Positions 4,137-46,715 of a DNA stretch of 64,000 nucleotides are shown here, piece by piece; position 1 is the stretch's first letter, and every line of letters starts with the position of its first letter. Location of the stretch: the sequence record OQ708376.1; one strand, written 5' to 3'. The notes under the pieces were generated by a model that did not search any database, was not told where the DNA came from, and saw only the letters and a program-made list of their open reading frames with translations. The translations under genes were made by a program, and so were the position numbers.

Positions 4137-4164
4137 TTGACATAAGATATCAGTACTGTATAAT
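4137..4164 (+). promoter_or_regulatory. sigma70-type promoter, 16-bp spacer containing AGTACT
   Basis: TTGACA-taagatatcagtactg-TATAAT. Confidence 0.8.
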
Positions 4165-13028: not shown

Positions 13029-13036
13029 TATAAATA
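13029..13036 (+). promoter_or_regulatory. putative late promoter TATAAATA
   Basis: Exact T4 late consensus; second exact copy at 13678..13685, TAAATA at 15251. Confidence 0.55.
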
Positions 13037-13072
13037 TTATAGTAAAATTTATCTCTTATAGGAGTTATAAAA

Positions 13073-13639: not shown

Positions 13640-13726
13640 CAAAATAAGGTTGACTTCGGTCAGCCTTTTCTTTATACTATAAATATAGTCATAGAGAAAA
13701 AAATGAAATCTATGGAGAGAAATCAA

Positions 13727-15214: not shown

Positions 15215-15285
15215 ACATTTAAAAGGTTGACTTCGGTCAACCTTTTTTTGTAAATATAAAAGAGGAATTAAGAAGAGGGATTACA

Positions 15286-19036: not shown

Positions 19037-19112
19037 GTTGACAAACACATTCAGTACTGTATAATGCTTATCAAGGGGATGAACTTCTCATCCCTACAAT
19101 CGAGGAACTACC

Positions 19113-22390: not shown

Positions 22391-24034
22391 ATGATTGGAA
22401 GTTTTTGTTTTATTGACAAAAAAAAACGTTCAAAACCTTATATTATTGCTGAAAAGGTAAGAAATATATTTTCTAATATAAAAGAAATAAATTGTGACTT
22501 TATTGGTTTTGATATTAACTCAATACTTGAATGGGAAGGGGAAAAAACATATATTTTATATGAAATAAATGGTATAACAAAAAAGATTAGATATGATATT
22601 CTAAGACAACATTCTAATAATGGTTCTTTTCCGAATAAAAAACATTTTAATTCTGAAGAATTAAAAAAATGTAGTAAAGAAAAAAAAATATTTGATTATG
22701 ATAAGTCAATGAGATTGTCATCTTATTATTCAACACCAAATATAATAACGGTTGGTGATAAAGATATATCATATTTTACTGCTCTTCAGTTAGAAGCTAT
22801 ATCTCCATATATGCATTTTAACTCTATCACACCCACTGAATATTCGAAAAAAATATTGAATAAGATAAAAGAGTTTAAAAATGTTGAAGTTATTTTTTAT
22901 GGATTTTATGTATCATACTATTCAGAATGGAATAACAAAAAAACAAAAATAGTAATATCTTTTAATGAATATGTTACCTATCATATGACAATTGATGATT
23001 TTTTATATAGTTTAGATAGTAATATAACAGATATTCCTCGTTTTAATTATAATAATGAAAATTTTATTTATCGTATGATGTTTTTTGGATATGCTAATAA
23101 TCATACTTTTGATTTATCAAATTTAAACATTAAAAATTCCAAATCAATAATTAGAAAAAAATGTAAAGTATGTAAAAGTACTGATGTAGTGAGTATTGCA
23201 CAACATATTAGGAATCCTAGTTGCTCTGTATGTTTTTATAATACTGAAAAATTTAATTATAATGAATATGAAGCATGTGAAGAAGTTGTTAATGAGTATA
23301 AGGGATTTCATTATATGAATCATGATAATATAAAATTCATTCCAATTGGATGTTCTTACACACCATTTGAATGGTATGAAATAATAAAATATAAGGGTGG
23401 TGATTCTTTTATTGGTTTTTATATTAACAGTTCTTCAGAGTTTGACGGTAATAAGACGAAAATTTTATTAGATATTAATGGGGTAATATTAACTCCAACA
23501 ATTCTCAATTTTCTTGAGAGATACGAAAATATGTATAAAGACCTAATAAATCCAACAATATCTTTGGAAATTATGTCTAATAATAAATACAAACCCTCGG
23601 TTGCACGTCACAAAAGAATCTTTAGTCAACCTATTTTAACATTAGGAGGGATTATTTCATCAAATGATTTATCATCATATGAAATGATAGTCGCATTGTT
23701 CCTAATCAAAAATAATATTGATTTTCATTTTCAATTCAGAACTGAAGAATCAATAGAATTTATGGGAAATAGAAGATATGATTTTTATGTACCAGATTAT
23801 AATCTAATCATTGAAGTTGATGGTGCACAGCATACAAACTATTGCCCAATATTTCATAGAAGTGAAGAGTGCTTACAAAAACAAATGGAAATTGATGAAA
23901 TAAAACTTGAATTTGCAAAAGAATCAGGATATAATTTTGCTCGCATTAACTATGATGAATCTATTGTTGATGAACTTATTAATGTGATTAAAAAAATATC
24001 ATCTGAAAATAATCAGATTATTAGAACTTATTAA
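22391..24034 (+). CDS. putative homing endonuclease, C-terminal PD-(D/E)xK (DUF559/Vsr-like) domain
   Basis: RYDFYVPDYNLIIEVDGAQH; CxxC...CxxC; very AT-rich. Confidence 0.7.
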   Translation: MIGSFCFIDKKKRSKPYIIAEKVRNIFSNIKEINCDFIGFDINSILEWEGEKTYILYEINGITKKIRYDILRQHSNNGSFPNKKHFNSEELKKCSKEKKIFDYDKSMRLSSYYSTPNIITVGDKDISYFTALQLEAISPYMHFNSITPTEYSKKILNKIKEFKNVEVIFYGFYVSYYSEWNNKKTKIVISFNEYVTYHMTIDDFLYSLDSNITDIPRFNYNNENFIYRMMFFGYANNHTFDLSNLNIKNSKSIIRKKCKVCKSTDVVSIAQHIRNPSCSVCFYNTEKFNYNEYEACEEVVNEYKGFHYMNHDNIKFIPIGCSYTPFEWYEIIKYKGGDSFIGFYINSSSEFDGNKTKILLDINGVILTPTILNFLERYENMYKDLINPTISLEIMSNNKYKPSVARHKRIFSQPILTLGGIISSNDLSSYEMIVALFLIKNNIDFHFQFRTEESIEFMGNRRYDFYVPDYNLIIEVDGAQHTNYCPIFHRSEECLQKQMEIDEIKLEFAKESGYNFARINYDESIVDELINVIKKISSENNQIIRTY

Positions 24035-24104: not shown

Positions 24105-24878
24105 ATGAACCGTACAGAGAAAGCAATCCAAATCGAAAAGAACTTCAACTCCATGATGGCAGCACTGGAATGTCTTCTTGATACACAAACTAACTCTATC
24201 AACTCTCTGATCGTTTCTGGTAAGGGTGGTGTTGGTAAAACTTATAACGTTGACCAACGGTTGCAGAAAGCTGATGATAACTTTGAAATCGACTACAAGA
24301 AAATCAGTGGTAAAGTAACTACTTTGGGTCTGTATGAAGCACTGTATCGTTCACGTCATGCAGCATCTGTACTGTTACTTGATGACGTTGATATCTTCTC
24401 GGACGAGACTAATATTGATTTGCTTAAAGCTGTGTTGGATACGTCAGAGAAGCGTGTAGTTTCTTACGCGACTTCTGCTAAGTACTTGGAACAGCAGGGT
24501 ATCCCTAAGCAGTTTGAATTCCGTGGTAAAGTAATCTTTCTGACTAACAAAAACCTGTCACAGATTGCTAAAGGTAAAAGCAGCTTAGCACCACACATCG
24601 ATGCACTGATCACTCGTAGTATCTTTGTTGACCTGCAACTGTTCACCAACGAAGAAGTGATGATTCACATTGAGAACATCATGAACAAAACTAACATCCT
24701 TGAAAACAATGGTGTTAACAAAAATGGTTGTAAAGCAATCCTGAATTGGATGCTGAGCAATGAAGATCGTCTACGTAGTCCTTCACTGCGTATGCCAGTA
24801 CTGATCGCTGGTCTGTATAATAAATTCCCATACGATTGGGAGTCAATGGCAGAGAATATGTTCCTTGATAAAATTTAA
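24105..24878 (+). CDS. AAA-like P-loop ATPase
   Basis: Walker A SGKGGVGKT, Walker B LLLDDVD, sensor-like FLTN. Confidence 0.85.
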   Translation: MNRTEKAIQIEKNFNSMMAALECLLDTQTNSINSLIVSGKGGVGKTYNVDQRLQKADDNFEIDYKKISGKVTTLGLYEALYRSRHAASVLLLDDVDIFSDETNIDLLKAVLDTSEKRVVSYATSAKYLEQQGIPKQFEFRGKVIFLTNKNLSQIAKGKSSLAPHIDALITRSIFVDLQLFTNEEVMIHIENIMNKTNILENNGVNKNGCKAILNWMLSNEDRLRSPSLRMPVLIAGLYNKFPYDWESMAENMFLDKI

Positions 24879-24945
24879 TTACATGCATTGACAGTACTAA
24901 CAATGTGTAGTACTATAACAAAAGTTTAATCACTGGAGACACCCA

Positions 24946-27726
24946 ATGCGTGAGTTTTTTGAATCTAATATAATGCTTGGTATTACACTGATATACATGT
25001 TTGTATTCTTGTTTTATCATTCAATTGTAATTAGTCTTTGGTATTTTAAAAGGAAAGTTGTTTTTAAATTGTATTCGTATGATAATGTATTCTTAGTTGT
25101 ATATAGCATTATACAAGGTGGGTTTATTTTATTTGGTGTGATGACATATGTGATTTACATGTTACAAATTGATAATACACCACACATTACACAATATGTT
25201 GTGTTTTCAGGACTAATCGTCTGGTTATTGGTGTGTACTATGTATTTTATTATTAAAGCTCGTGATAACTTTAAATGGGGATTCTAATGTTAGAATTTTT
25301 TAAATCAGATACAATGATTAGTATTACTTTGATTTATCTGTTTGGTTTTTTCTTTTATCATGCACTAGTTGTAGTACTATGGTATTTTAAAAAGAAAATT
25401 GTTTTTAAACTGTATCCAGTGAGGAATTCATCACTAGTTCTTTACACACTTGTTCAAGGTTTGTTTGCAATTGTTGGTCTTATGGCACACTTAATTTATT
25501 GTGCTAATCCTCACTTGAACTCAATCTCACAATATATTGTATTCTTTGGGTTGTTCATTTGGTTAGTTGCATACTTAATCCATCTCATTATTCATGGTAG
25601 AGATAAAATTCGCGGAGACTTCTAATGTTTGAAGCTTATCTTGAGTTTTTAAGGAGTAGTCCAGTTGCACATTCACTTGCAGGGATTATTCTAACAACTT
25701 ATGTATCATTTTGGTTAGTTATGTTTCTAGGATGGTATTTTAAACGACAATTCTATAAACGTAATGGTGAAGATTTTATGAATTCTGCCATTAATCAATC
25801 GTTGTTTGCATCAACATTGATTGCATGTATTGTAGCAACACTCACAGGAAAGGTACTACCAGCTTTTTCCGCAGTTTACGGCACACTTGGGATGATATGT
25901 TTAACTTTTATATTGACCATTAAAATTTGTTGTGTTATGATTGAACTTCGAAATAAGATACCGGAGGAATGATGGAGTACTTTATTGATTTACTGCCGTG
26001 GTATATGAAAGTTAGTACTTTGTACTATATTATTAGTGCTGGGTTCTACTTTCTGATGTGGTTCTTCAAACGACCAATTTCAGTATTCATCTCTGATAAC
26101 ATGCTGCAATTAAAATTACACGCATGGTTTGGTATGGCGATGATTATGCCAATTATTCACTACTCAATGATTAGTAGAGGTTTCCGTTCTAATGGTGAAC
26201 CAATTGTATTAGTATTCTATTGGGGTTCAACTATTGCATATGTAAGTTTGTTGTTGTTCCCAGTCGTTCATAAGTTACGTGCTAAAGTTCCTGATGCGAG
26301 GTACTAATGGATATAGTAACATTGATTTACACGTTGTATTCATTCTATTTCATTATGTGTTGGGTTGGATTTTTATTTGTACTCAAGATGTTTGATTATG
26401 TTGAAAAACAGATAAAAGAATTTTGTATTCCTTTTATCGGTTCAACCATTATTAGTGTTTCTTGTGTGTATTTTTTGGTTTTTGATCCACCAGATAACAC
26501 TGCAATGATTGACTTGATGTTACTACCAACAACTGTTACTTTTTTATGTAGTCTGATGCCGCCGATTAGCCGTGGACTAACAGAATTTAGACGCAATCAA
26601 AAGCGTAAACGAGGGATGTAATGGAAATTGCTCTTATTATCTTAACTGCTATGCTGTTTATTAGTACTGTGGTTATAATTGGTAAATTCTTTTGTGTATC
26701 ATTTTTAGAAACGGTATACGATGAAATTGCTGATGATTATGAATTACAAGCCGGATTTTTCATTACGTATTGGCTTAGTTTATTTTGTCTAGTCATTGCT
26801 TGGATTTTACATATCTTTAAATGGGGTATGGTAGACGGTGATCCTATTATGGCAATTATTGTTCTAGTGTTTGGTATCCTTGGTGGTGCAGTGCATAATC
26901 TAATGGTTATCTGGCAAACTGTTCAATATGTTTTGGTTCCCTATTTCGAAAAGATGCACAGTACAATTAAAAAACGTAAACGAGGTTAGTATGAACGGGA
27001 TAGAATTATCTTTCGTTGGTCAATTACTAGTAATGGCGTATACATTTATCTTCTCACTGAATGCATTCGTGTGCATTGGGAAGTACTTCCATAAGCGACC
27101 ATTATCAAATATATATGATGTAATCCAAAAGAGATATAGTCCAGCATATACTGTGTTGGGTACAGTATTCAATTTTGGTTTTATTGTATTAATAATTGGA
27201 CTGTTCACATCCTCTTTGAATACAATAACCTTTGGTCTTATGATATGTTCATTGGTATTAGCCGTAATTATATGTTGTTTAGTACTGCACCTTGTGGTAC
27301 TATTGTATATAAAGATCTCTGAAATCCACCAACGTTTGGGTATGAGGAAATAATATGAGTTACCGTGAGATATTTTCCATTATTTCAATTATTATGTTCA
27401 GTACTGGAACACTGGTATGGTTATTATACTTCTTCTGTATTAATCCAGTGTATAATATGTTATGTAATATTAAATCAAGTGCCGGATATATCACTTTTAT
27501 GGTCTTTATGGGATATTATTGTCTAAGCATTTTAGGTGTTGTTTTGGTTGTTATATTTGATGTGGGACCAAATAGTGATGGTATGGAAATACATGAATTA
27601 ATAACCATGTTTGGATGTATGATACCAACAGCACTACTGTTTGTAGCTACTGGTAGTGGATTGATAAAATTATATAATTATTTAAAATCCATTCATAATT
27701 CCATTCATAATAAGCGTATGTCATAA
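24946..27726 (+). CDS. eight tandem paralogous ~105-125-aa membrane proteins (24946..25287, 25287..25625, 25625..25972, 25969..26307, 26307..26621, 26621..26989, 26991..27353, 27355..27726)
   Basis: Three hydrophobic helices, W/K-Y-F-K motif after helix 1, basic C-terminus; stop/start coupling. Confidence 0.75.
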
Positions 27727-27767: not shown

Positions 27768-28430
27768 ATGATGAAATCAAAATTAGGTTTGTTTTATAAA
27801 AATTATTTTGTTAAACAACGTAAATTTATAAAAAAATATTTCTCTGGAGAGAAGTCTAGTCCTATAATCTTTAAAAGACCAAGTTATAATACTTACTTAG
27901 CTGGTGCTAAACAGTCTAAGAAATTTATTACTCTTTTACATAAAAACAACATTAAAGCTTCTTATGTTGAAACGAGAAGAAACTCATCAATAACTCCGGG
28001 TGATTTTATTGAGTACGGATGTTTCAATATTAAGTACAATGATAATACATACTTTATGGATATTGATTGTAATACATCCAATCTTTTTAACATTGTAGTA
28101 AATCCATTAAAACAATATAATGTTTATGGTGATTCTATTATCAAATTAATCAAAAACAAAGATGGCTTTGATTTTGAAATAAATGTTTTAGATGATAATT
28201 TTGACGAAGTACCCGTAAACCCTGAAATCTGTGATATTTTAAACAGTTTAAAAGGTAGTACCTACAATATATCATCTGATTTAATGTTTCAGTACTCATT
28301 AATCCATAAAGATATTGAAAAGTATATTGAATGCTCCAGAATTTTGAATTTTCTCTATGATGAATTTAAAAAGAGTTCTAAAATAACTGCATACACTTTG
28401 TACAATATTCCTAAAATGGTGAATCTTTGA
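27768..28430 (+). CDS. hypothetical protein, ExxFQxS family
   Basis: LNSLKGSTYNISSDLMFQYSLIH; AAGGAG RBS. Confidence 0.7.
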   Translation: MMKSKLGLFYKNYFVKQRKFIKKYFSGEKSSPIIFKRPSYNTYLAGAKQSKKFITLLHKNNIKASYVETRRNSSITPGDFIEYGCFNIKYNDNTYFMDIDCNTSNLFNIVVNPLKQYNVYGDSIIKLIKNKDGFDFEINVLDDNFDEVPVNPEICDILNSLKGSTYNISSDLMFQYSLIHKDIEKYIECSRILNFLYDEFKKSSKITAYTLYNIPKMVNL

Positions 28431-29563
28431 CAAATACAGTACTGGCAACTCCACCGTCTGTAATATTTTGTCCAGTACTGTAAATTTGTATACCATCGGT
28501 TAAGTAAGTTCTGTATAAAGTTGCTGTAACATATACGTTATTCATATTCATCTCTGTTGGTAGTACACATTTGGTATAGGCCGACACATCGGTTTGTGTA
28601 CCTATACCTAATTGTCCTGCGTTATCGCCTGTGTTATTACCAGTTGCGTAAACACCCAATGAAGTTATAATATGATTAGAAAAATATGAATAACCTACAC
28701 TGCTTCTTATTATATCGCCAGGTGCTTGTGTTGTTTGTCTTAACGAAATATATGTTTGTGATGTAGAACCATTTGCTAACTGACCAAAGTATTGACCACC
28801 ACCATGATATGCAAATAATTTATTAGTACTATTATTATTTGCTATAGCAAAAGCAAAGTAACTTGAGTTTGTTGTATAATCTTTTACTGTATAGGTATTA
28901 GTTATTTGAGAACATAACGTGTACTTTGAATATAACGTCATGTCGGTTGTACCTACGCCTGATATTGCACCAGTATAATACAATCTTCCATCGGTTCCAA
29001 TAAAACCTTGCATAAGAAAATTTGCCAATATTTTGGATGGTGTAACTCCAGTAGGTACTGTTCCTTGTACAAATGATGAAAGTGAATCAGTACTTCTACC
29101 ATTTCCTAGTTGACCATAACTACCATAGCCTGTATTCCATATAGTGTTGTCTGTGCATAATACGCTCAGTGCTCCTGCACTAACTACAATTTGTTTTATT
29201 GTTTTGCCTAGGGCTGTTATTCTATCAAACACTATCTTTGCAGAAGACCACGTTGTTGACTTATCAGTTGATAAACCGAATGATGCACCATTTCCAGCGT
29301 ACCACATCGTATTATCTTTCTTTTTTATTAAGGTTGACTCATACCCGCACCCATAGATCTTCTACGTTTGTATTGCATAAAACCCATTTCGTTTGTGTTA
29401 TAATATTACCTATACCCATTTGCCCAAACTCTTGAGAGCCTCTACTGTACAACGTACCATCTGACATAAGGGCAAAAACTGTCGTATCAGATGAAGCTAT
29501 TTTTGTAACAGAAGGTTGTATGTTCTTTTTTGATGATGTGATAATTCTTCCAAAGGGTAGCAT
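28411..29563 (-). pseudogene. RCC1/BLIP-II-like propeller paralog 1, +1 frameshift
   Basis: MLPFGRI start at 29563; removing one C at 29350..29352 gives LWCGYESTLIKKKDNTMWY in frame with 28411..29307. Confidence 0.75.
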
Positions 29564-29634
29564 TGTATCCTCCAAATGTAAATCGTTATTATATTTAGGA
29601 CAAAAAAATGCCAGTACAAAATACTGGCTTTATT

Positions 29635-30840
29635 TTATATACCACGACTGGGTATTTTATATAATTGAAATTTAGTGTAATAATCAGAAACTGTTGTACC
29701 TGTCGCTTGTGGGATATAGCCACTCAAATACACATCCCCTTGATTATCCATATACACATTTGTACATTCACTTGGACAGAATAACTCGATGCTGCCAACT
29801 TTAGGTGCATCAACTGGAACTACAAATGTAGTACTTGATGTGGTATTACCGCGACCGAGCCTACCATATGTGTTTATACCACACATATAAAGTGAATTGT
29901 TAGTTTTAACCGTAAGCCCACCATATGTTAATGAATTTGATTTCATTTCCATATTATCTGATATTGGTAGAGTGGAGATTGTAGATAATACTGTCCCTGA
30001 TGAAGCGGCTGAACCATTACCCAAGTTACCTTCCGATTGAATCCCACTTGCACGAACTGTATATGTATTATTCGTGTTGTGTTTAGATACAACCCATGAT
30101 GCACTCCCACCAAGTTCATAATGTATAACAGTATTGTTGGCTAATGCACCCATTTGTGTCCATACTTTAACGTTAGTTTCACCATTACTTATACCAAGTG
30201 AACCCCATGTGTTTTGACCAGTGACCCAAAGTGTTTTATCAATTTTCTGCACAATCACTGCACTTGAACCTGTTTTTACACTATCCACATTCGTATTAAT
30301 TGAAGTAAATGTTGATAATCTTGTGGTTGTGTTATTACCAAAATATCCCTGTGTATTGGCCCCCATTCCATATAGCGTACCATTTTGAAGTAAAACAAAA
30401 ATACCCTCCCCTACAATTTGAATGTCCTTAATTTGCGACAATTGTGTTGCATTGAATACTGATGTAAAATATGAAGTACAATCAGTATAAGTACTGACAG
30501 TACTTAATCCTGTACCAATAGCTCTACCTACGCCACTGTAATAAAATTTATTATCTTCGGTTTGGATTAAATTAAAAGAACCTTGGGCTGTTCTAAAACG
30601 TTTTACATTTTGGTATATTAAAGCCCACTCTTTTACTTTCGCATTAGGTACACCATTTCCGAATCCATAGTTTTGTGAACTAGTTCCACCTATACCCATT
30701 AAGTCTCCATTTTTATATAATAGTAAGAGTGCTGTTGCTGGAATAACTGACGCACTATAACCATTGTAAATAAAGATTTCTTTCACTTCAGGAACTTTCA
30801 TTTTATTTGCGTATTTTATCATCCTTGGAAAAGGTAACAT
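29635..30840 (-). CDS. RCC1/BLIP-II-like propeller paralog 2
   Basis: MLPFPRMIKYAN; G.N..G.LG repeats; 401 aa. Confidence 0.85.
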   Translation of the reverse strand: MLPFPRMIKYANKMKVPEVKEIFIYNGYSASVIPATALLLLYKNGDLMGIGGTSSQNYGFGNGVPNAKVKEWALIYQNVKRFRTAQGSFNLIQTEDNKFYYSGVGRAIGTGLSTVSTYTDCTSYFTSVFNATQLSQIKDIQIVGEGIFVLLQNGTLYGMGANTQGYFGNNTTTRLSTFTSINTNVDSVKTGSSAVIVQKIDKTLWVTGQNTWGSLGISNGETNVKVWTQMGALANNTVIHYELGGSASWVVSKHNTNNTYTVRASGIQSEGNLGNGSAASSGTVLSTISTLPISDNMEMKSNSLTYGGLTVKTNNSLYMCGINTYGRLGRGNTTSSTTFVVPVDAPKVGSIELFCPSECTNVYMDNQGDVYLSGYIPQATGTTVSDYYTKFQLYKIPSRGI

Positions 30841-30915
30841 AAATCCCTCCTTTATTCATTATACTATATTTAATCAAAAAGAAAAGCCAGCACTCTGTAC
30901 TGGCATTTAAAATAA

Positions 30916-32091
30916 TCAAATTGTAGGAAGTAGGAATTCTTTCATAACAGATGAACTGCTTGCAGATACATTATCTGGTGATTTCCCTGCGTAGTATAAT
31001 TTATTATTAATGAACATATACAATGTTGCATCATTTCCTGCAACTAGTGATTCACTTTTCTTAAATTGAACACCACTAGGTAAAATTGCTTCAACAAATG
31101 AACCTGATTCTCTTGTAGTATTATTTGCCAATTGACCATTGTTATTATAACCAGTACTATAAATTTTACCTGAACTATAATATACGAGTCCACGAGTACT
31201 AGTGTTTTCTATTCGAATGAATTCACTATCATCTGGAACTGTAGTTGATAGTACTGGGTTTAACTTATAAGCAGATGTTACATTATTATTACCCAATTGA
31301 CCATAACCTTGAAAGCCTAGAGTGTACATTGGACATGATTCTGGTGTACCTTTTGTTATAATACCAATATAATTCGAACTACAAAAAATATCTATTGCTT
31401 CTGTAATAGGTGTACCCTTATATTGAACCCAAGGGAATACATACGTTTGTTGCTTACTATTTCCCAAAGTACCGGAAGTTGTTGTTCCTGTACGCCACAT
31501 TGTATCATCAAGTTTAATTATCCAGTTAGCTGGCGTTATCGATGAACAGAATTTTTTAACATTATCCACTAAAAATGTAAATTTATTATAATATGATGCA
31601 GTGTTTATTCCAAACTTAGCACCAGTATTATCACCTAACAAATATAAACTATTATCTGTATCTAAAATCAAAGCATAATCATAACCCACGTATATCTCTT
31701 TAATTTTTGAAATACCAAATTGTGCGAAATAGCTTGTACATTCAGTGAATGTTGTCACTGTATTTGTTGTGTTATTACCTAGCCATTTATCTAAACCACT
31801 ATAAAAGAATCTATCATCATTTGTGCGTATTAGACAAAAAGAGTTCATTGTACTGCACCAAAAATCTTTAACATTGCTGTATATTTGTGTCCATTCAGTT
31901 ACTTGATTAGTATGACCTAAACCAAAAATTCCACCATTCTGAAGACCAATAGCCCATATTGAACCATTTTTGTCAAGCATCATCGTGCATGTATATGAAT
32001 AACCACATGACGGGGTAACTAATTTAACAAAATTGGGAATATATGGTAAAACTTTATTTCCATAATCCAACATTCTTACAAAAGGTAACAT
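30916..32091 (-). CDS. RCC1/BLIP-II-like propeller paralog 3
   Basis: MLPFVRMLDYGN; GYNNNGQL repeats; 391 aa. Confidence 0.85.
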   Translation of the reverse strand: MLPFVRMLDYGNKVLPYIPNFVKLVTPSCGYSYTCTMMLDKNGSIWAIGLQNGGIFGLGHTNQVTEWTQIYSNVKDFWCSTMNSFCLIRTNDDRFFYSGLDKWLGNNTTNTVTTFTECTSYFAQFGISKIKEIYVGYDYALILDTDNSLYLLGDNTGAKFGINTASYYNKFTFLVDNVKKFCSSITPANWIIKLDDTMWRTGTTTSGTLGNSKQQTYVFPWVQYKGTPITEAIDIFCSSNYIGIITKGTPESCPMYTLGFQGYGQLGNNNVTSAYKLNPVLSTTVPDDSEFIRIENTSTRGLVYYSSGKIYSTGYNNNGQLANNTTRESGSFVEAILPSGVQFKKSESLVAGNDATLYMFINNKLYYAGKSPDNVSASSSSVMKEFLLPTI

Positions 32092-32162
32092 AAATTCCTC
32101 CTTTATTCATTATACTATATTTAATACAAATAAGAAAGCCAGTACAGAGTACTGGCATAATG

Positions 32163-33314
32163 TCAATAAGCATCCCAAGGTAATGGTGTCTTTCTAAACC
32201 CATACCTAGTTGCGTTCTGCCCATCTCCGGCAATGTATCTACCGGTCCCACACTGATATAATTCAGTACTGCTACATATCGCACCACCAATAGTACCACT
32301 ACACCACTGTGTTATATTAGAATATAATATTGGTAAATCACTACATTTGGTATATACTGCAACCGTGGCAGTCCCGCTCGGACCACCAAACACACTTCGG
32401 TTCGAACCCGTGTAATATATGCCATCTGGACTCATAAATGCAGATGTATAAGTTGTACTGCAATCCACTGGACTTCTTATATTATTAAGATCGCTTGGGT
32501 ATGCTCTAGCACCATATGTGTATACATTACCAGCAGTAGTAATACCATTACCTAACTGACCATCATTTTGTCCACCACATGTAACCAACGATGCAGTACC
32601 GGAAACAATTGCAGTAGCATTATACGAAGTACCTATAGCAATAGAAGCACCCGCCCTTTGGGATGGGGTAGGAACTGCGGCTGCGTTCCCCTGACCTAAT
32701 TCACCATTGACATTTCTTCCCCATCCATATACCGAGGTGGTATCTAATTGACATAGTACTGTACCATAACTAAACGTATATCGTATATCTTTCACAGCCG
32801 ATGGTAAACCACTAACTTTAGTTGCAACACTAATAACTCCAGAAACGCCAGTAACTCCAGCGTTTGCGTTCATATTACGTCCATATGCGTATAAAGAACC
32901 ATCAGCAGTTTTAATATGCATCATGCCATCTGTGCAATATAATGCATCGATGCTATCCACTACAACCGCTCCCATACTAGACGTTATATCGTTCCACCCA
33001 AACGTTGTAGTATTAGAAATTAAGTTATTTCCAGCGTAAAGTATTCTATTATTATTTGTAACTACAACTGTATAATTGGCAGTAACGCCAATTAATCTAA
33101 CATTCTCATATATCTTAGACCACATTCCTATTGAATTTGTGTTAGCATCCAGAAATCCCAACTGACCAGCGGTATTATATCCAATACCCCACACATCACC
33201 TGCACTGTCCAATAACACTTCATGGGAAAAACCAATCTTAAAATCTTTTATCGTTGGTGTTACAGGAACAGGTTTAATATTCCCGTACTGAATCATTCTT
33301 GCAAAAGGTAACAT
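32163..33314 (-). CDS. RCC1/BLIP-II-like propeller paralog 4
   Basis: True start MLPFARMIQYGN after GGAGG; GWGRNVNGELG repeat. Confidence 0.85.
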   Translation of the reverse strand: MLPFARMIQYGNIKPVPVTPTIKDFKIGFSHEVLLDSAGDVWGIGYNTAGQLGFLDANTNSIGMWSKIYENVRLIGVTANYTVVVTNNNRILYAGNNLISNTTTFGWNDITSSMGAVVVDSIDALYCTDGMMHIKTADGSLYAYGRNMNANAGVTGVSGVISVATKVSGLPSAVKDIRYTFSYGTVLCQLDTTSVYGWGRNVNGELGQGNAAAVPTPSQRAGASIAIGTSYNATAIVSGTASLVTCGGQNDGQLGNGITTAGNVYTYGARAYPSDLNNIRSPVDCSTTYTSAFMSPDGIYYTGSNRSVFGGPSGTATVAVYTKCSDLPILYSNITQWCSGTIGGAICSSTELYQCGTGRYIAGDGQNATRYGFRKTPLPWDAY

Positions 33315-33385
33315 AATTCCCTCCTTATTCATTATACTATATTTAATACAAATAAGAAAGCCAGTACAGAGTACTGGCATTGTGT

Positions 33386-34565
33386 TTATCTAAAAGGAAT
33401 GCACTTTTTGAATTTATATATATATCCAGTCTCACCTTGTTCAGTAAAATACCCAGGGTTTCCAGTCCAGTATAAATCCTCACCTATACTAACTACCGAT
33501 ACTGAACCATTACCAATCGTACCAAACCACTCAACATATGATAAGTCAACACTATCATCAAAGAATTCTATTGGTAATATTGAACCATAATTCCCAGAGA
33601 ATGCGTTGCGGCCTAATCCAGCACCATTAGAATTATATCCCTTACCATTCGTATTAATAATGTTAGTACTGGATTTTATTGCATTAACATAGGATACTGG
33701 TGAAAGTTTATCGAATGAATTTGCTGTTATATCGGTATAGGGATTTGTAGTAAATGATGACCTTATTATAGCAGTATTTTCAGAACCACCTATAGTCAAC
33801 TGTGTGTTCCAACCAGCCGCCATTAAAGACAAAGCAGATGTACTACTTTGAACAATCAAACGTGTTACCCATCGTGTAGCTTGTACTGCAATTACATGAG
33901 AACTACCAAGATTCAATGCAGTAAAAGTAGTAATAGGATTATTATCACCGGTTCCTAATTGATAAAAAGTATTCTCACCACAACGATAATATATACCATC
34001 TTTTATATAGTGAAAGTTTCTGCTCATTTCACTAGATGCAATTGCAGATACACTAGTGTCTATTAAGAGTGGAGATGTAATTGGTGTAGTTGCTGTACCC
34101 AATTCACTTGCACCATTCATGCCTATACCATATAACTGACCGTCACTTGTTAGTATTAACATGGAATTGTTAGTACTGGTTGATGATGTTATTTTTATAT
34201 CTTTTATTGAACTCGGAGAAATAGATCCAAAATATGATTCACAACGAGTCCATGTTGAAACAGAAGATGATATACCAAAAACTGAGTTAGTTCCACTATA
34301 GTACAATTCCCCTTGTTTTGTTCTAATTATAGTACAATATAAAGAACTCCAGAAATCATCAACACTATAAGGACATAAAACCCATCTATCTAAAAAAGAT
34401 GAACCAGTAACTCCCATTTTTGATAATTGGTTTCCGTCCACGCATATATAATGACCCATCACTGTATAATACGCTTATTGAATTTTCATCACTATTAATT
34501 TTAACAACAGTATCTTTGCCAGGGGCAATATTCCCATAATTCATCATTCTTCCAAAAGGTAACAT
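33386..34565 (-). pseudogene. RCC1/BLIP-II-like propeller paralog 5, +1 frameshift
   Basis: MLPFGRMMNYGN at 34565; removing one T at 34431..34433 gives LYMRGRNQLSKMG in frame with 33386..34462. Confidence 0.75.
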
Positions 34566-34639
34566 AATTCCCTCCTTTATTCATTATAATATATTTAATA
34601 CAAAAAAGAAAAGCCAGTACTGAAGTACTGGCGAAATTA

Positions 34640-35830
34640 TTACAATTGTCTAGGTGTATCCAGAACATATCTAGTTGTACTAGGACCACCATCATCATAA
34701 GTTCCGGTTGAATATATATTTTTCATATCAGCAGTTAGAAAAGTACGATACGAACCGCGATATATTTTTATTTTATCATACATAGAATATGTTATTTGTG
34801 TAGGCATTGGACATGCAGTAAACTTACCAACAGTTGCACTAGTACCAATACCCAATGAACCAGCATAACTACTGGCATTTAAACCAGTTGCATATACACC
34901 AGTACTCGTAACTAGTATACTAGATTGTGTTGGGTATCCTGTATGAATTGAATACAAAGTTCCAGTTGGTAATGTCGTACTATTGCTCCCTAATACAGCA
35001 AGTGCCGAACTGGTTGTGGTATTGTTACCCCATGCACCATTACTCGCTAAACCACCAACTAGAAACTGACGTGCACCAGAACTTGGATTCTCAACCAAAG
35101 CACTGACTGCACCACTTGAGCATCCAGTGTATTGTAACGTTTTTGTGTATGTTGTACTTGGTTTATATAAAGTATATTCATTAAATGGTGTCCATGTGGT
35201 ACTGGTACTTATACCTGACGTACCACCACCAATATATAAATTATTTTGTGTATCAAAAAACATTACACAGTTATTTGTTGACTGTATTTGTGCAATATCA
35301 ACATTAGGCGTGACAGCTTTTACAAATGATCCATCTGTTATTTGTTGAGTACTACCAGTACCATCAGCGAATTGTCTAGCCCCACTCCAACCAGTACTCC
35401 ATATTGTATTATTATCCATTAATACCGTAAACCACGTAGTACCTCCATACATCTGTTTAATTGAAGTACTTGAACTTTGCGTGTACAAATTTTCAATATA
35501 TTGGTTATAACTTAAAAACGTAGTAGTACTAGTTGGTAAACCAAGATGATCACCATATCCACAATAAAAATAATTTGAGTCATTATCTTTTACTAATAAA
35601 GTTCCTTGTGTAAGCCAGCAATCGTTAACGTTTTCTCTAATTAATGTCCATGATTTTAATGCAGTGTTGTTTCCTCTACCGAATTTCCCAAAACTATTAT
35701 TCCCACGTGCATATAGTTGACCATCCGTATACAGAACCACAACATCTAAATCAGTTGGGATTATTTTCTTAATTTGAAGTGGTACTGGGACAATATTCCC
35801 ATAATTCATCATTCTTGCAAAAGGTAACAT
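34640..35830 (-). CDS. RCC1/BLIP-II-like propeller paralog 6
   Basis: MLPFARMMNYGN; 396 aa. Confidence 0.85.
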   Translation of the reverse strand: MLPFARMMNYGNIVPVPLQIKKIIPTDLDVVVLYTDGQLYARGNNSFGKFGRGNNTALKSWTLIRENVNDCWLTQGTLLVKDNDSNYFYCGYGDHLGLPTSTTTFLSYNQYIENLYTQSSSTSIKQMYGGTTWFTVLMDNNTIWSTGWSGARQFADGTGSTQQITDGSFVKAVTPNVDIAQIQSTNNCVMFFDTQNNLYIGGGTSGISTSTTWTPFNEYTLYKPSTTYTKTLQYTGCSSGAVSALVENPSSGARQFLVGGLASNGAWGNNTTTSSALAVLGSNSTTLPTGTLYSIHTGYPTQSSILVTSTGVYATGLNASSYAGSLGIGTSATVGKFTACPMPTQITYSMYDKIKIYRGSYRTFLTADMKNIYSTGTYDDGGPSTTRYVLDTPRQL

Positions 35831-35901
35831 ATTTCCCTCCTTTATTCATTATACTATATTTAATACAAATAAGAAAGCCAGTACAGTGTACTGGCATTAT
35901 A

Positions 35902-37041
35902 TTATTTCCACGGTAGAAGTGAATCAGGAACCCTTGTTGGTACAGTAGTTGAAGACATTCCAGTAAGATTGGGTACACCACATGTGTATAAATTATTATA
36001 TTCGTCAACTAACATCGTATAAGAATAGCTCTTACAAAAACTACTAAGATTACTACCTTCTAATGCAGTAAGATCCATTTCAGCGAATGATGTTATATAC
36101 ATATCAGTTGTACCAATACCACATTGACCATTTGAATTAAGGCCACATGAAAATAACTTATTATTATTATTAATTATACAGGATGGTCCGGTAAGGTTTG
36201 TCCCAAGCTCACCCACCAACTCCACTTCTCCTTGGAATGATAAATTTGGAATTAATGTACTCATTGGGGCTACTGACCTATTTCCTGTACCTGCTTGTCC
36301 ATAGTCGTTAATAGATGCAACTTTAACATTACCATCATTAAGAAATATATAAGAAGTTTCATTTGTATTGACTGCTTTAATTGCATTACTAATCGAAGTA
36401 TCTTGTGTAAATGTGAGCAAGTTTTGTGTCGTCGTTCCTGATACAAACGTTCTACCTGCATACCAATATGAACCATCATTTAGTACTAATCCAGTACTAT
36501 ATATTGCACAACCAGCACTGATAACATTTTCTATTGTACTATAGGTGAATCGTGAAACGCTTGAAGTTGATCCATTCCCAAAAACACCACCAGTACCAGC
36601 ACCACAGTAGAACCACTTTCCATTTTTTAAAAATACACGCATACACGAAGATATCACAACACTATCAATATCATCTGCACTGACACCGAAATCAGTAAAG
36701 TTCTGTGTTATATCAACCCAAACGCCGTTAGTGTTTGAAGATAGTATTGGAATAACAGTACGTCTACCAGTGTACCAAATAGTACCATCTTTCTTTATAG
36801 CAATTGTTCCTTGTACCCCACCCCAATATCGTGTAACATTTGAGTTGACAAGAGTCCATTCAGTTGAAGAGTCCAATGAACCATTACCACTTTGTCCATA
36901 TGCTGAAGAACCAAACCAATATAGATTACCATTTGTGTGTAAATAAAATTTGGCATCAGCAGAACATTGTAACCTGTTTTTAGGTAGAATCAGTTCAGGT
37001 GCGATATTCCCGTACTTAACCATTCTTGCAAAAGGTAACAT
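35902..37041 (-). CDS. RCC1/BLIP-II-like propeller paralog 7
   Basis: True start MLPFARMVKYGN; CGLNSNGQCGIG repeat. Confidence 0.85.
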   Translation of the reverse strand: MLPFARMVKYGNIAPELILPKNRLQCSADAKFYLHTNGNLYWFGSSAYGQSGNGSLDSSTEWTLVNSNVTRYWGGVQGTIAIKKDGTIWYTGRRTVIPILSSNTNGVWVDITQNFTDFGVSADDIDSVVISSCMRVFLKNGKWFYCGAGTGGVFGNGSTSSVSRFTYSTIENVISAGCAIYSTGLVLNDGSYWYAGRTFVSGTTTQNLLTFTQDTSISNAIKAVNTNETSYIFLNDGNVKVASINDYGQAGTGNRSVAPMSTLIPNLSFQGEVELVGELGTNLTGPSCIINNNNKLFSCGLNSNGQCGIGTTDMYITSFAEMDLTALEGSNLSSFCKSYSYTMLVDEYNNLYTCGVPNLTGMSSTTVPTRVPDSLLPWK

Positions 37042-37111
37042 ATTCCCTCCTTTATTTGTTATACTATATTTAATACAAATAAGAAAGCCAGTACAGAGTA
37101 CTGGCATTATG

Positions 37112-38221
37112 TTATTTTGGTAAATCAATTTTAGTAAAGACTGCAACATCCTCGATTGCACCTGGAATGGCGTAATACGATCCAGTACTATACACATCTC
37201 CATTTTTGGTTAATATCGATGTCAAACCATCACTAAAAAGAACATCCCTAATCTCACTAACTTCAACGGGTAATTGTAAATTGGTAGCACTATATATAGC
37301 ACCAGTTTGAGAATTGTTTAATCCCAAACCACGGTTCGCCCCAACACCCTTCTGATATGTACTAGTAATTACCATTTGTGTAGCAGTATTTAAGGCAGGT
37401 GAATTCGTCATAAACAACGGAGAACTATTAGGCAAAGTACTTAAAGGAACTGCACGGAATGTAGTCGTACCTGAACTAAGAAAGTTTGGAGTTTGACCAC
37501 ATACGAAATATGATGTACCATTATAGTAATTTAATGCATTACCACCAATGGCTGCATCGATTACACCAGAACTACGCAATCCCCAAGTGTTAATTTGTGT
37601 TTGGTTCCCCGTACCATGCTGCCCACTACTATTCCATCCAGAACTATATAGCTTATTATCTAATGTAAGATACATACTATCATTCGCATTGGTCATTACT
37701 TTACGAACGTTCGTAGCACATTGAGTTAATGTGTAAATTGATGATGAACCAATACCCAAAGAACCACGATATCCATTATCTCCTGCACCATAGAGTACTG
37801 AATTAGTGCTAAGTACAAATATTAAACCATTTGTGCATACAATATTAGCAATTTCACTGACTGGTATAGCATTGGTAAACCAACTAGTCCTTTCAACTAA
37901 TACAGTACTGTAAGAAGTAGTTGTAGAAGATGAGAACCAGTACGTTTGACCTGATGTCCATATAGTATTATCATTTTTAATAATAACAAGTGTACGATCA
38001 CCCACGAAAAAATTAGAAACATCTGCACTTACTAATGTCCACGAAGACACCGTGTTGGTATTACCATTTCCAGATTCACCACCTTGATTTCTACCTATGT
38101 AATATAAATCATGTGAATCAGTCAATAAGAATTGACCTTGTGTAGAAGCACCAACTTTAATTATTTTTTTAGGACCAGGGACAATATTTCCATACCTAAT
38201 TATTCTTCCAAAAGGTAACAT
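37112..38221 (-). CDS. RCC1/BLIP-II-like propeller paralog 8
   Basis: True start MLPFGRIIRYGN; SGWNSSGQHG repeat. Confidence 0.85.
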   Translation of the reverse strand: MLPFGRIIRYGNIVPGPKKIIKVGASTQGQFLLTDSHDLYYIGRNQGGESGNGNTNTVSSWTLVSADVSNFFVGDRTLVIIKNDNTIWTSGQTYWFSSSTTTSYSTVLVERTSWFTNAIPVSEIANIVCTNGLIFVLSTNSVLYGAGDNGYRGSLGIGSSSIYTLTQCATNVRKVMTNANDSMYLTLDNKLYSSGWNSSGQHGTGNQTQINTWGLRSSGVIDAAIGGNALNYYNGTSYFVCGQTPNFLSSGTTTFRAVPLSTLPNSSPLFMTNSPALNTATQMVITSTYQKGVGANRGLGLNNSQTGAIYSATNLQLPVEVSEIRDVLFSDGLTSILTKNGDVYSTGSYYAIPGAIEDVAVFTKIDLPK

Positions 38222-38229
38222 ATTCCCTC

Positions 38230-39432
38230 CTATTGTTGCCATAACTGCGTTGGCATTAATGTTAGTGTAGTAATACTATAAGTGCCATCTGGCAATCTAC
38301 CACCATTTCCATTCCAGCCACCACATGCATATAATTTATAATCTTTAGTAATTATTATGGTTCTGCTCCAATCTTTAGATGCCATAAGAACATTTTCATA
38401 ACCACCACTTATTGCACTAAGATTAAAAATATTCCAAGTTCTAACTAATGTATTAGTTCCATTACCTTCTTGACCATATGAGTTAGCACCACTACTTCTA
38501 ACATATGGTGCGTATTGTGCCATAGGTGCACCAATTGATGCATTTCCCATATTACTTGGACAAATAAAAGTACTGTACTTACTTACATCAACCGTGACCG
38601 ATGTGTTCCTAATTGGTGTTAGCTGATTTACCGATGTAGTCGTACCATTACCCGCTTGTCCAGTACTGTTAGCCCCGCTATAATATACAGACCCACCAGT
38701 AGTAAACCACCAAGTAACATCGTATGTAGTACTAATATGTTCTACATTACTAATCACGAATTTGTTCAAATATACAACAGAACTACCACCACATCCACTT
38801 TCACCAAAGTTATCCTTACCACAAAACCATGCATCTTTATTTGATTTGATATAGTGCGTTCCTTGTAATGAACATGCCATATGTGTAACTTCACCCATAT
38901 TAGTCATAACTGTGAGTGTAGGGATGGAATTTTTATTACCAGAGCCACATTCACCATTGGTATTTCTTCCACACGCAATTACTCTACCATCGGTTAATAA
39001 TATTCTAGTACTTTCACCTATATATACACTCTTGATCATATTAGCCATAACACCTATTTTATTAAATGCAACAGTAACATCAGTCCATGTTGTCAAATAA
39101 CCATTAACAGGTGTTGCATCTCCATAATCAGAAAATGCAGCCACAGACCCAGTGTAGTATATTTTATTATCCAAATCAATCATCAACGAACCTTGAACAC
39201 CAAGCCAAAAGGCTGCACAGTTCCTTGCAAGTACTGTAAATGACGAAACTGCTGCTGAATTCCCAAGACCAAATTGATACATGTTATTACTACCATAACC
39301 ATATAAAGTATTAGTTGGGTTATGTAGATACATACAGTTTGTATAATGTTGTTGTAAAACATCTGAGAACTCTACAGGTTCTGGACCTGGTGCAATATTT
39401 GCGTACTTAACCATTCTTCCAAAAGGTAACAT
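38230..39432 (-). CDS. RCC1/BLIP-II-like propeller paralog 9
   Basis: MLPFGRMVKYAN; CGRNTNGECG repeat; 400 aa. Confidence 0.85.
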   Translation of the reverse strand: MLPFGRMVKYANIAPGPEPVEFSDVLQQHYTNCMYLHNPTNTLYGYGSNNMYQFGLGNSAAVSSFTVLARNCAAFWLGVQGSLMIDLDNKIYYTGSVAAFSDYGDATPVNGYLTTWTDVTVAFNKIGVMANMIKSVYIGESTRILLTDGRVIACGRNTNGECGSGNKNSIPTLTVMTNMGEVTHMACSLQGTHYIKSNKDAWFCGKDNFGESGCGGSSVVYLNKFVISNVEHISTTYDVTWWFTTGGSVYYSGANSTGQAGNGTTTSVNQLTPIRNTSVTVDVSKYSTFICPSNMGNASIGAPMAQYAPYVRSSGANSYGQEGNGTNTLVRTWNIFNLSAISGGYENVLMASKDWSRTIIITKDYKLYACGGWNGNGGRLPDGTYSITTLTLMPTQLWQQ

Positions 39433-39480
39433 ATTTCCCTCCTTATTAATTATATCATATTTACCCCATAAAGAAAACCC

Positions 39481-40982: not shown

Positions 40983-41654
40983 ATGAAACTTAATGCACAC
41001 AGCAAACAATACCTTAAGCACTTTAAGTACCTCAATAGTATTCAGGCAGAATCAGTTACATCTGCATATACGTATCACCCGAATGTACTAAAGAAACGAA
41101 ATAAAAAGGAAAAATCCAGTACAAATGGAGTTAACGTATCAAAGAACCTTGAATTGTACATGAAGAAAAATAATATAGCTGTTCATTATATGAATATCTA
41201 TAATACTGATTTAAAAGTATTGAGTACTAATACGAGCACAAAGGTACTAAAGAACGCATCCTTCATCATCAATATGCAGTTGGATAATACCCCGTGCACT
41301 TTAATGCTATACTTCGGGAATACATACTTCTTCGGGAATTGTAACACCTCCCACGATGTCAATACAGCACAATTCCAAATGGGTGGCATATACTCTACTG
41401 ATGCAGAAAAAGTACACGAGAATATGCACTTCTGGCAAGCACAACGTACAGAAGAAACTGATACAGTACTACAATTCCTCAAAGAATTACAAGGCAAAGA
41501 ATTATCCGAGGAAGAACTATTCATGTACAGTACTGTAATCGATAATCCAGCACTCTATAAAAATGCGTACAATCTGACAAAACATGTACAGGAAATTATC
41601 AGTACTAATAAGAAAATGCATCACCTCATTACGTATATTACAAACTATGTATAA
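40983..41654 (+). CDS. hypothetical protein, ExxFQxS family, interrupting the small-gene array
   Basis: LKELQGKELSEEELFMYSTVID. Confidence 0.75.
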   Translation: MKLNAHSKQYLKHFKYLNSIQAESVTSAYTYHPNVLKKRNKKEKSSTNGVNVSKNLELYMKKNNIAVHYMNIYNTDLKVLSTNTSTKVLKNASFIINMQLDNTPCTLMLYFGNTYFFGNCNTSHDVNTAQFQMGGIYSTDAEKVHENMHFWQAQRTEETDTVLQFLKELQGKELSEEELFMYSTVIDNPALYKNAYNLTKHVQEIISTNKKMHHLITYITNYV

Positions 41655-44611: not shown

Positions 44612-44755
44612 TATGTCTAGCCCTCCAGAAGTCTGGAAGTAAAGATGGCTATCCATCTAGACGGCTAAACGGCTAGATTTCTGGATGGCTGGATGGCTAG
44701 ACGTTTGGACGGCTAAACGGCTAGATGGTTACACGTCTGGAAGTATAGACGGCTA
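44612..44755 (+). repeat. phased degenerate 8-bp tandem array, consensus GAYGGCTA, 18 units
   Basis: Near-consensus units at 44644, 44660, 44668, 44684, 44692, 44708, 44716, 44724, 44748, all in the same 8-bp register. Confidence 0.85.
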
Positions 44756-45471: not shown

Positions 45472-45585
45472 AAACTATTTTAAAAGTATTTGTAGAAAGT
45501 ACTTGCACCGTACTGATAAAAGCGTATAATGTTTTACATCGAGAGCGGGAACACTTCCCGCTACACATTAAGAGAGATTAAAACG

Positions 45586-45948: not shown

Positions 45949-46041
45949 GTTTAATAAAGTACTTGCAAACTATGTTTAATGGCGTATAATGTTTTACATC
46001 AGGTGGGGAATAGTTCCCCACTATATAAGAGGATTAAAAAA

Positions 46042-46367: not shown

Positions 46368-46634
46368 ATGAAAATTAAGTATTTTGCGACGCGTGAACAA
46401 GCTCGGATCGCCGCACGCCAGGACGGGGCAACGTTTAAAGATATGGGCGTACAATCGGAACGTGGTAAACGTTGGGCCATTGTAAAGCGTAGTACCGCCA
46501 GATCATTACAGTACTGGTTAGCGGCCTTAAAAAGTCCCGATAGTGTATCGCGTCGAGTGGTAGAAATAAAGCTCGACCGAAAGGGCAACCGCGTGACCGT
46601 GTACCGTACTAAAAAGATTGCAGTACTTGAATAA
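46368..46634 (+). CDS. basic early protein, paralog of 58345..58740
   Basis: K(Y/F)(F/Y)ATRE.AR..AR..GA.FKDMG and DRKGNRVTVY shared. Confidence 0.75.
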   Translation: MKIKYFATREQARIAARQDGATFKDMGVQSERGKRWAIVKRSTARSLQYWLAALKSPDSVSRRVVEIKLDRKGNRVTVYRTKKIAVLE

Positions 46635-46715
46635 AAAGTACTTGCAAACTATGTTTAATGGCGTATAATGTTTTACATCGAGAGCGGGAACTCTTCCCGC
46701 CTATAACCTGGAGTA

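Follow-up and report, generated by a model that had tools for sequence, protein, structure and literature searches.

The 64,000-nucleotide (nt) stretch of DNA analyzed here, referred to as the window, is 100% identical to the last 64 kb of the genome of Escherichia phage vB_EcoM_CRJP21 (OQ708376.1, 366 kb, genus Asteriusvirus). A window position equals the position in that record minus 302,301. The window carries a tandem array of genes for RCC1-like beta-propeller proteins, with near-identical copies of a short repeat, the unit, at the gene boundaries. Comparison of these units and of the genes between them, both within CRJP21 and among related phages, indicated that the unit is probably a composite regulatory cassette and, at the same time, a substrate for homologous recombination by which whole propeller genes are exchanged between arrays. 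The array and its genes are located as follows (lengths in amino acids, aa).

28411-39432, minus strand: array of nine RCC1-like beta-propeller paralogs, cassette types in gene order D A E B L C G J H
38230-39432, minus strand: g1, type D, 400 aa, opens the array
37112-38221, minus strand: g2, type A, 369 aa, fused to g1 without terminator or promoter in between
35902-37041, minus strand: g3, type E, 379 aa
34640-35830, minus strand: g4, type B, 396 aa, protein used for the structure model
33386-34565, minus strand: g5, type L, frameshifted after codon 59
32163-33314, minus strand: g6, type C, 383 aa
30916-32091, minus strand: g7, type G, 391 aa
29635-30840, minus strand: g8, type J, 401 aa
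28411-29563, minus strand: g9, type H, frameshifted after codon 74, closes the array

The start pattern ATG(T/C)TACC(T/C)TTT was found on the minus strand at 39432, 38221, 37041, 35830, 34565, 33314, 32091, 30840, and 29563, and nowhere else in the window on either strand. All nine array proteins open with MLPF, and their lengths range from 369 to 401 aa. They matched Pfam RCC1, RCC1_2, and WD40_RLD as well as phrog_4219, with RCC1 and RCC1_2 scores that exceeded the cut-offs in most paralogs. A profile built from 24 paralogs matched the structures of HERC2, UVR8, RPGR, and RCC1 in a sequence-profile search of the PDB (E 1e-47 to 1e-24), and an AlphaFold2 model of the protein encoded by g4 (34640-35830) was an all-beta propeller with a predicted template modeling score (pTM) of 0.85.

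Two of the nine genes are interrupted. The interruption of type L was found at the identical codon in all four phages that carry L, and that of type H at the identical codon in all seven that carry H. These frameshifts were therefore regarded as inherited and not as sequencing errors. Type I, which does not occur in the window, was a truncated 245-aa cassette in each of its six carriers among the 11 phages whose arrays were compared. These sequences indicated that the array contains inherited pseudogenes. Programmed frameshifting in g9 was considered and rejected, since inspection by eye revealed no slippery sequence at the site, and the gene was read as a putative pseudogene. Besides its frameshift, the terminal cassette H also carries the most degenerate unit.

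Read on the gene strand, the full unit consists of GCCAGTAC, a loop of 3-4 nt, GTACTGGC, a T-rich run, TTAAATATAGTATAAT, AAGGAGGG, and an ATG followed by approximately 14 conserved codons (MLPFxRMxxYGNIxP). Its hairpin has a GC-rich stem of 8 bp (approximately -13 kcal/mol, z-scores of -2.7 to -4.3) and is followed by the T-run, TAAATAT/TATAAT, a ribosome-binding site (RBS), and the ATG. Eight copies of the unit were found within 11 kb and none elsewhere in the window. These copies, together with the single junction that lacks a full unit, are listed below.

39391-39470, minus strand: boundary unit before the first gene, with TAAATAT, TATAAT, RBS, and conserved codons but without terminator hairpin; no significant fold was found over this interval
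38180-38232, minus strand: fused D>A junction, without hairpin and promoter; GGAGGG RBS and conserved 5' codons kept
37000-37105, minus strand: unit A>E, with hairpin at 37087-37105, T-run, TAAATAT at 37066-37072, RBS, ATG at 37041, and 14 conserved codons; -13.3 kcal/mol, z-score -4.3
35789-35895, minus strand: unit E>B, site of a one-cassette difference from phage PBECO4
34524-34632, minus strand: unit B>L, hairpin with a 4-nt loop
33273-33378, minus strand: unit L>C
32050-32156, minus strand: unit C>G
30799-30904, minus strand: unit G>J
29522-29628, minus strand: unit J>H, diverged; hairpin, TAAATAT, and GGAGG kept, spacing altered; starts ATGCTACCCTTT

The hairpin pattern GCCAGTAC-N3-GTACTGGC yielded six matches in the window, where none were expected, and a seventh hairpin copy with a 4-nt loop lies at 34613-34632. 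For the 29-nt promoter/RBS core, five matches were found (none expected), and a sixth core copy, before the gene that starts at 33314, carries a deletion of 1 nt. Six near-identical units are located upstream of the starts at 37041, 35830, 34565, 33314, 32091, and 30840. These pattern counts confirmed the six near-identical copies and two variants described in an earlier note on this DNA. That note had also correctly identified a single gene pair joined without the unit: at the D>A junction at 38221, hairpin and promoter are both missing, and the TAG stop codon of g1 sits within the Shine-Dalgarno sequence of g2. Two of its figures required correction. The unit, given as approximately 85 bp, measures approximately 105-120 bp because homology continues for approximately 42 nt into the coding sequence, and the array, whose limits had been placed at 29565-39470, extends down to 28411.

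This anatomy supported the view that each array gene, except for the fused pair, forms a self-contained unit with a predicted terminator, a promoter-like motif, and a strong RBS. In the record of phage G17, the array hairpins were annotated as terminators by the depositors, and two copies of the unit are marked 'repeat_region' in the record of UE-S1. Related sequence was found in 37 Asteriusvirus records (33 from Escherichia and 4 from Salmonella phages). Every one of these 37 records contained the unit, which was absent from all others in a collection of 50,697 phage records. Asteriusvirus records other than that of CRJP21 each contained 4-13 unit places, with the exception of EJP2, in which one weak match was found. 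When IMG/VR was scanned with protein B, only phage 121Q itself matched. A literature search yielded no description of the unit repeat in these phages, nor of the palindrome CAGTACTG on which its hairpin is based; in the paper on phAPEC6, only eleven RCC1-like genes and tandem duplication are mentioned.

Conservation of the unit strongly exceeded that of the genes between the copies, as had been claimed earlier. Among the six core copies, the 72 nt upstream of the ATG were 85-96% identical, and the first 15 codons showed 78% nt and 67% aa identity between paralogs. Identities in the gene bodies, calculated from a codon alignment, were 41% at the nt level and 23% at the aa level (aa range between paralogs 19-30%). 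Identical residues were encoded by the same codon 83% of the time within the first 15 codons, as compared to 46% in the body.

Gene order and gene content were compared among 11 phages. Cassettes were cut from ATG to next ATG, and cassette types were defined by clustering of gene bodies at ≥85% nt identity over ≥70% of their length. The earlier note had proposed gene number and order across isolates as a point of comparison, and neither was invariant: the 11 phages showed 11 different orders, with 9-13 cassettes each, 28 cassette types, and 50 distinct cassette adjacencies among a total of 111. The order D A E B L C G J H of CRJP21 may be compared with D A E F B L C G J H in PBECO4, F M A E B I W C N K S H in 121Q, and F Z a A C I B G b in UE-S1. 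Type C had six different successors, and type F was found in first position in 121Q and UE-S1, in fourth position in PBECO4, and in fifth position in G17. In all nine carriers of type D, the next cassette was A, in keeping with the absence of a full unit between these two genes. At the start of the array, an identical boundary sequence was found in other phages upstream of whichever cassette leads (D, P, Q, F, or X). Phage phAPEC6 and six metagenome contigs added further arrangements and new types. Based on these sequences, the Asteriusvirus population appears to hold a pool of at least 28 cassette types, which are combined differently in each isolate.

Exchange at the unit was visible in near-identical genomes that differ by a single cassette. 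CRJP21 and PBECO4 are ≥99.5% identical across the locus and 99.9-100% identical in shared cassette bodies; their difference consists of one 1,220-bp cassette of type F that is extra in PBECO4. In CRJP21, the two alignment blocks overlap by 120 bp at window positions 35787-35906, which corresponds to the unit. The E>B copy of CRJP21 is a hybrid that combines the RBS-spacer variant of the E>F unit of PBECO4 with the gene start of B, thus indicating a crossover within approximately 40 nt of identical 5' coding sequence. Phage ELP-22 carries the other RBS variant at its E>B junction, where the crossover lies upstream of the RBS and thus at a different point from that in CRJP21. A further one-cassette difference was observed between metagenome contigs L019 and L020, which are 99.8% identical and whose overlap of 40 bp lies at the 5' coding sequence. 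In both pairs, the unit appears collapsed to a single hybrid copy.

The same preference for the unit was seen in the whole comparison set. Ends of blocks with ≥95% identity were collected for all ordered pairs of the 11 phages, and 371 of 469 ends (79%) fell within a unit zone from -85 to +50 of a cassette ATG, where 11% was expected, although these are counts over related genomes and not over independent samples. Neighboring cassettes showed discordant affinities, indicative of mosaicism: B of CRJP21 is 99.8% identical to its counterpart in slurp01 and 90-91% identical to those in 121Q and SP27, whereas C is 98% identical to those in 121Q and SP27 and 84-90% identical to those in slurp01, E9.1, SHEFM2K, and ELP-22. 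Cassette 5' ends, too, varied separately from the bodies to which they are attached. Type A occurred with seven N-terminal variants on a body that is 93-99.9% identical among ten isolates and 90% identical in contig L019, type C of CRJP21 carries a 5' end that is found on type R in slurp01, and G17 has an F>M unit that exactly matches the F>B unit of other phages, down to the B-type codons. Overall, cassette 5' ends were closer to those of their genomic neighbors than expected by chance (0.2244 versus 0.2349 ± 0.002, 0 of 2000 permutations of the same related genomes). Cassettes of types V and N share their 3' ends.

Crossovers were located at more than one position in the unit as well as at the boundary copy, which has no hairpin; such a distribution fits general homologous recombination and not a site-specific system. 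For the genus, a recombinase A has been reported but no integrase or excisionase, and no integrase was annotated near the array in six records. These observations agree with the earlier note, in which homologous recombination or conversion between repeats was proposed and no dedicated recombinase was visible. On an evolutionary time scale, such recombination at the unit is well supported by these sequence comparisons, and it may also take place at measurable rates within a lysate. A raw-read DNA run contained no reads from the phage, metatranscriptome contigs were short and of shallow coverage, and the few joints reported had short sides within repeats. The earlier note had proposed that recombination between repeats can excise, duplicate, or swap whole genes, as in an accordion. 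Gain or loss and swapping of whole cassettes were borne out by the two single-cassette indels and the distribution of block ends, but duplication was not: no pair of cassettes from one genome exceeded 74% nt identity in any of the 11 phages. There is thus no sign of recent duplication or amplification, and the accordion is the wrong picture. Instead, the array appears to consist of old paralogs that have been dealt out in different combinations.

The motif TAAATAT in the unit provided an indication of when the array genes are expressed. It occurs 12 times in the window, as compared to 43 ± 6.5 expected occurrences (3.6-fold depletion). All 12 copies are located on the coding strand, upstream of a Shine-Dalgarno sequence and a start codon, and 8 of them belong to array units. 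The distance to the start codon is 25-40 nt in 11 cases and approximately 13 nt in one (10016). Two of the four sites outside the array, at 13029 and 13678, read TATAAATA, the T4 late consensus.

13029-13037 and 13678-13686: T4-type late-promoter motif TATAAATAT
15251-15257: TAAATAT, listed with the T4-type late-promoter motifs

The genes that follow the sites at 13029 and 13678 matched 'virion structural protein' PHROGs (E 6e-56 and 5e-250, respectively), and a hairpin with T-run lies directly upstream of the sites at 13678 and 15251, as in the array units. In the related phages CBB and GAP32, a late motif ATAAATA has been predicted before structural genes, and a gp55-like sigma factor has been described in CBB; for Sharanji, only an RpoD-like sigma factor has been reported. 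In purified virions of phAPEC6, eight array proteins were detected (gp003, 005, 006, 007, 009, 010, 549, and 551), with 1-5 unique peptides each. Late expression of the array genes, suggested earlier on the basis of TAAATA, is therefore indirectly supported by the distribution of TAAATAT, by TATAAATA before virion genes, by the motif in CBB and GAP32, and by the phAPEC6 virion proteins. It is plausible and represents the best reading of the motif.

Two features of the unit itself argue against assignment to the T4 late class. Array units read ATTAAATA with the core TAAATAT, which corresponds to six of the eight positions of the T4 late consensus. Moreover, a TATAAT lies 2 nt downstream of the motif and could represent a weak, -10-only host sigma70 promoter. 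A sigma70 scan reported none of the units, and the sequence 16-18 nt upstream of the TATAAT is the T-run of the terminator; a sigma70 promoter was rejected because the unit lacks a -35 element. Both the promoter class and the terminator activity of the unit are what we infer from its motifs and predicted fold.

The 14 N-terminal residues encoded by the unit form the most conserved segment of the array proteins. M1, L2, P3, F4, R6, Y10, and N12 were invariant in 24 paralogs that are otherwise 16-32% identical to the reference protein. In the AlphaFold2 model, residues 1-19 had no predicted secondary structure and were located outside the propeller; confidence was low there, with mean predicted local distance difference test (pLDDT) scores of 48 (residues 1-10) and 69 (residues 11-20). 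That variable, virion-associated proteins have in common a conserved and apparently unstructured peptide suggests that it may act as a shared signal for docking to, or loading into, the virion.

A unit that is only regulatory, copied in ancient tandem duplications and kept by purifying selection while array differences arose by ordinary recombination in gene bodies and flanks, could account for part of these observations. Several points favor such an explanation or limit the case for a role of the unit in recombination. In a set of 81 units, TTAAATATAGTATAAT, GGAGG, and the stem hardly varied, and most differences affected the T-run, the loop of the hairpin, and the spacer of the RBS. As invariant functional elements with a variable loop and spacers are what selection on function would leave, conservation of the unit alone is no proof of homogenization, and purifying selection would explain much of it. 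Genome-specific homogenization of the upstream unit gave no signal (0.138 within versus 0.142 between genomes). The 3' ends shared by types V and N indicated that recombination within gene bodies does occur, the direction of the single-cassette indels (gain versus loss) cannot be told, and the kinship of the compared genomes limits the weight of both the block-end counts and the permutation test. Recombination may thus be a use of the repeat and not necessarily the reason for its presence. An exclusively regulatory role is nonetheless considered unlikely. It does not readily explain two single-cassette indels between near-identical genomes that have the unit as their overlap and a hybrid junction, nor the presence of 79% of block ends inside the unit. 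Any GC-rich stem would terminate, yet the stem was identical in 81 units, with no compensatory changes. Conservation of synonymous sites in the first 15 codons and the swapping of 5' ends between cassette bodies further argue against it.

A dedicated site-specific system, such as an integron-like recombinase or a hairpin-recognizing nuclease, might also move the cassettes. Their organization recalls that of integrons, and the invariant stem is a split CAGTACTG, a palindrome that is 65-fold over-represented in the window. Such a system was judged very unlikely, however, since the crossovers lie in different places (upstream of the RBS in ELP-22, but within 5' coding sequence in both CRJP21 and L020), the boundary copy recombines without a hairpin, the hairpin is a perfect 8-bp stem devoid of attC features, and neither the reports on the genus nor the annotation near the array in six records include an integrase or excisionase. 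A gene accordion in the poxvirus sense, in which copies of one gene are rapidly amplified and collapsed under selection, would in principle be permitted by unequal crossing-over in a tandem array with direct repeats. This scenario is equally improbable in view of the 74% ceiling on nt identity within each of the 11 genomes, the 19-30% aa identity between paralogs, and the observation that array size changes via different gene types and not via copies of one type. Finally, a 120-bp repeat could cause assembly artefacts in short-read assemblies that resemble differences between isolates; Logan contigs of public runs do break at units, and phage SD-6 has fragmented genes. That the differences as a whole arose in this way is hardly credible: adjacencies recurred across independent projects (E>F>B in six phages and E>B in three, the latter with two junction variants), the unit is short enough to be spanned by reads of 150-250 nt, the same kind of indel appeared in metagenome contigs, and the different gene bodies, which represent 28 types, are real sequence.

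According to the preferred reading, in which the unit combines regulation with recombination, an intrinsic-terminator hairpin, a -35-less TAAATAT promoter of the T4-late type, a strong RBS, and the first approximately 14 codons would together make each RCC1-like propeller gene an autonomous and probably late transcription unit. The approximately 105-120 bp of near-identity between genes that are otherwise approximately 23% identical would, at the same time, offer a substrate to the general homologous recombination of the phage. Unequal or inter-phage crossovers within the unit would then remove, insert, or exchange whole genes, and conversion tracts would swap the 5' ends of cassettes.

Promoter-early stem-loops (PeSLs) of T4-type phages (Arbiol et al., 2010, PMC2839356; Comeau et al., 2014, PMC4122927) are, together with the internal-protein loci of T-even phages, the nearest described parallels to the unit. 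Both are composites of a stem-loop terminator and a promoter, repeated among non-essential genes in a hyperplastic region of a large lytic myovirus. In both, the motif contains the endpoints of indels and replacements that distinguish close relatives, crossovers are scattered inside it, and no dedicated recombinase is involved. The unit is, however, unrelated to PeSLs in sequence and belongs to another phage lineage, the jumbo Asteriusvirus. Its promoter motif is -35-less and T4-late-like (TAAATAT), whereas PeSL promoters are of the sigma70-early class with -35, -10, and an AT-rich UP element. Its homology extends approximately 42 nt into coding sequence, and it separates paralogs of one virion-associated family, whereas PeSL-associated genes are unrelated ORFans. 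PeSLs form mini-circles, whereas the array is known here from genome and contig sequences.

Internal-protein (IP) loci of T-even phages also encode variable, virion-carried proteins with a conserved N-terminal segment, and flanking PeSL-like elements confine shuffling at these loci (PMC2839356). Array products resemble IPs in the shared N-terminal segment and in their presence in virions, as observed for phAPEC6. The two systems differ in that the IP N-terminus is a capsid-targeting sequence that is cleaved by the prohead protease, whereas MLPFxRMxxYGNI is known here as a conserved sequence only; in that IPs are small basic proteins, whereas the propellers are approximately 40 kDa; and in promoter class.

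Morons, described by Hendrix, Juhala and colleagues, are autonomous promoter-gene-terminator units inserted between phage genes. Unlike the array cassettes, they are single, unrelated insertions that are usually expressed from the prophage and do not form a tandem family with one repeated boundary. Gene accordions of poxviruses, reportedly the subject of work by Elde et al. in 2012, share with the array a tandem arrangement that is in principle able to expand and contract by unequal crossing-over. They differ from it in that the array contains no recent duplicates and owes its diversity to shuffled old paralogs. Integron cassettes are promoterless and need an integrase and attC. The array shares with them a series of single-gene cassettes that is variable in number and order, but each of its cassettes has its own predicted promoter, there is no known integrase, and crossovers are not confined to one site. 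A comparison with integron cassettes has also been drawn by the authors of the PeSL study (PMC2839356).

The palindrome CAGTACTG, which forms the terminator stem of the array when split by the loop, occurs 59 times in the window versus 0.9 expected (65-fold) and is the most over-represented 8-mer there; examples are located at 4151, 19052, 44228, 48274, 60707, and 62679. The shorter AGTACT occurs 280 times in the 64 kb and is enriched in relatives as well, at 3-7 per kb. Within genes, CAGTACTG mostly encodes Ser-Thr. Non-coding copies fill the spacer of sigma70-like promoters and abut the -10 element (TTGACA-N9/10-CAGTACTG-TATAAT). Before small plus-strand genes, repeated units were found that combine a sigma70-like promoter with a downstream GC hairpin in the leader, which points to a second, early-type family of promoter/stem-loop repeats in the same phage. 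These repeats and other features in and around the array region are listed below.

45493-45561, 45953-46021, and 46632-46700, also near 19052, 48274, and 60707: sigma70-like promoter followed by GC hairpin in the leader, before small plus-strand genes
44627-44754: 8-bp periodic repeats (GGATGGCT / AGACGGCT), iteron-like, in a non-coding stretch
24105-26989, plus strand: open reading frame (ORF) of 257 aa, followed by six ORFs of approximately 104-122 aa
39535-43585, plus strand: second tandem array, approximately 17 ORFs of 59-87 aa, split by a 223-aa ORF at 40983-41654
22391-24034: hypothetical gene

In the CRJP21 record, five of the seven ORFs at 24105-26989 bear the label 'regulator of chromosome condensation' or 'DNA condensation', with the RCC1 labels lying at 24105-26621. 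A Pfam RCC1 match was obtained for none of the seven, so that these labels look like annotation carry-over. In the second tandem array, many of the small ORFs begin with a common M(N/H/Y)KE(F/Y)Y and end in a sequence resembling LIYRY; they are arranged end to end without a regulatory unit between them, and their number varies among isolates. In ELP-22 (L005), a gene annotated as a homing endonuclease is located at 263-1687, approximately 4.4 kb from the last array gene. Its counterpart by position in CRJP21 is the hypothetical gene at 22391-24034, which is of similar size.

With the reading proposed here, repeat-mediated modular shuffling, known from T4-type phages, would extend to the 350-kb jumbo phages of the genus Asteriusvirus. 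The array offers an unusually clean case: a single protein family and a single repeat are involved, each of 11 isolates has its own arrangement, and near-identical genomes differ by one cassette. In phage-therapy genomics, isolates that are otherwise identical can be expected to differ at this locus, which is also prone to mis-assembly from short reads. Cassettes that can be swapped or deleted at the unit would also provide a direct handle for testing the role of the propellers.

One tentative extension is that the array acts as a plug-in system. Any recombined cassette would automatically be transcribed late, translated from the same strong RBS, and loaded onto or into the virion via its N-terminal peptide, which would yield a repertoire of host-interaction proteins, and the hairpin based on CAGTACTG could be recognized by a protein that stimulates exchange. 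If this possibility holds, the products may be decorations or adhesins on the 'hairy' particle or ejected counter-defense proteins. The RCC1-like 'DNA condensation' genes of these phages would, in the preferred reading of the unit, constitute a variable and probably late-expressed set of virion-associated proteins, which points to a role in host interaction and not in DNA condensation.

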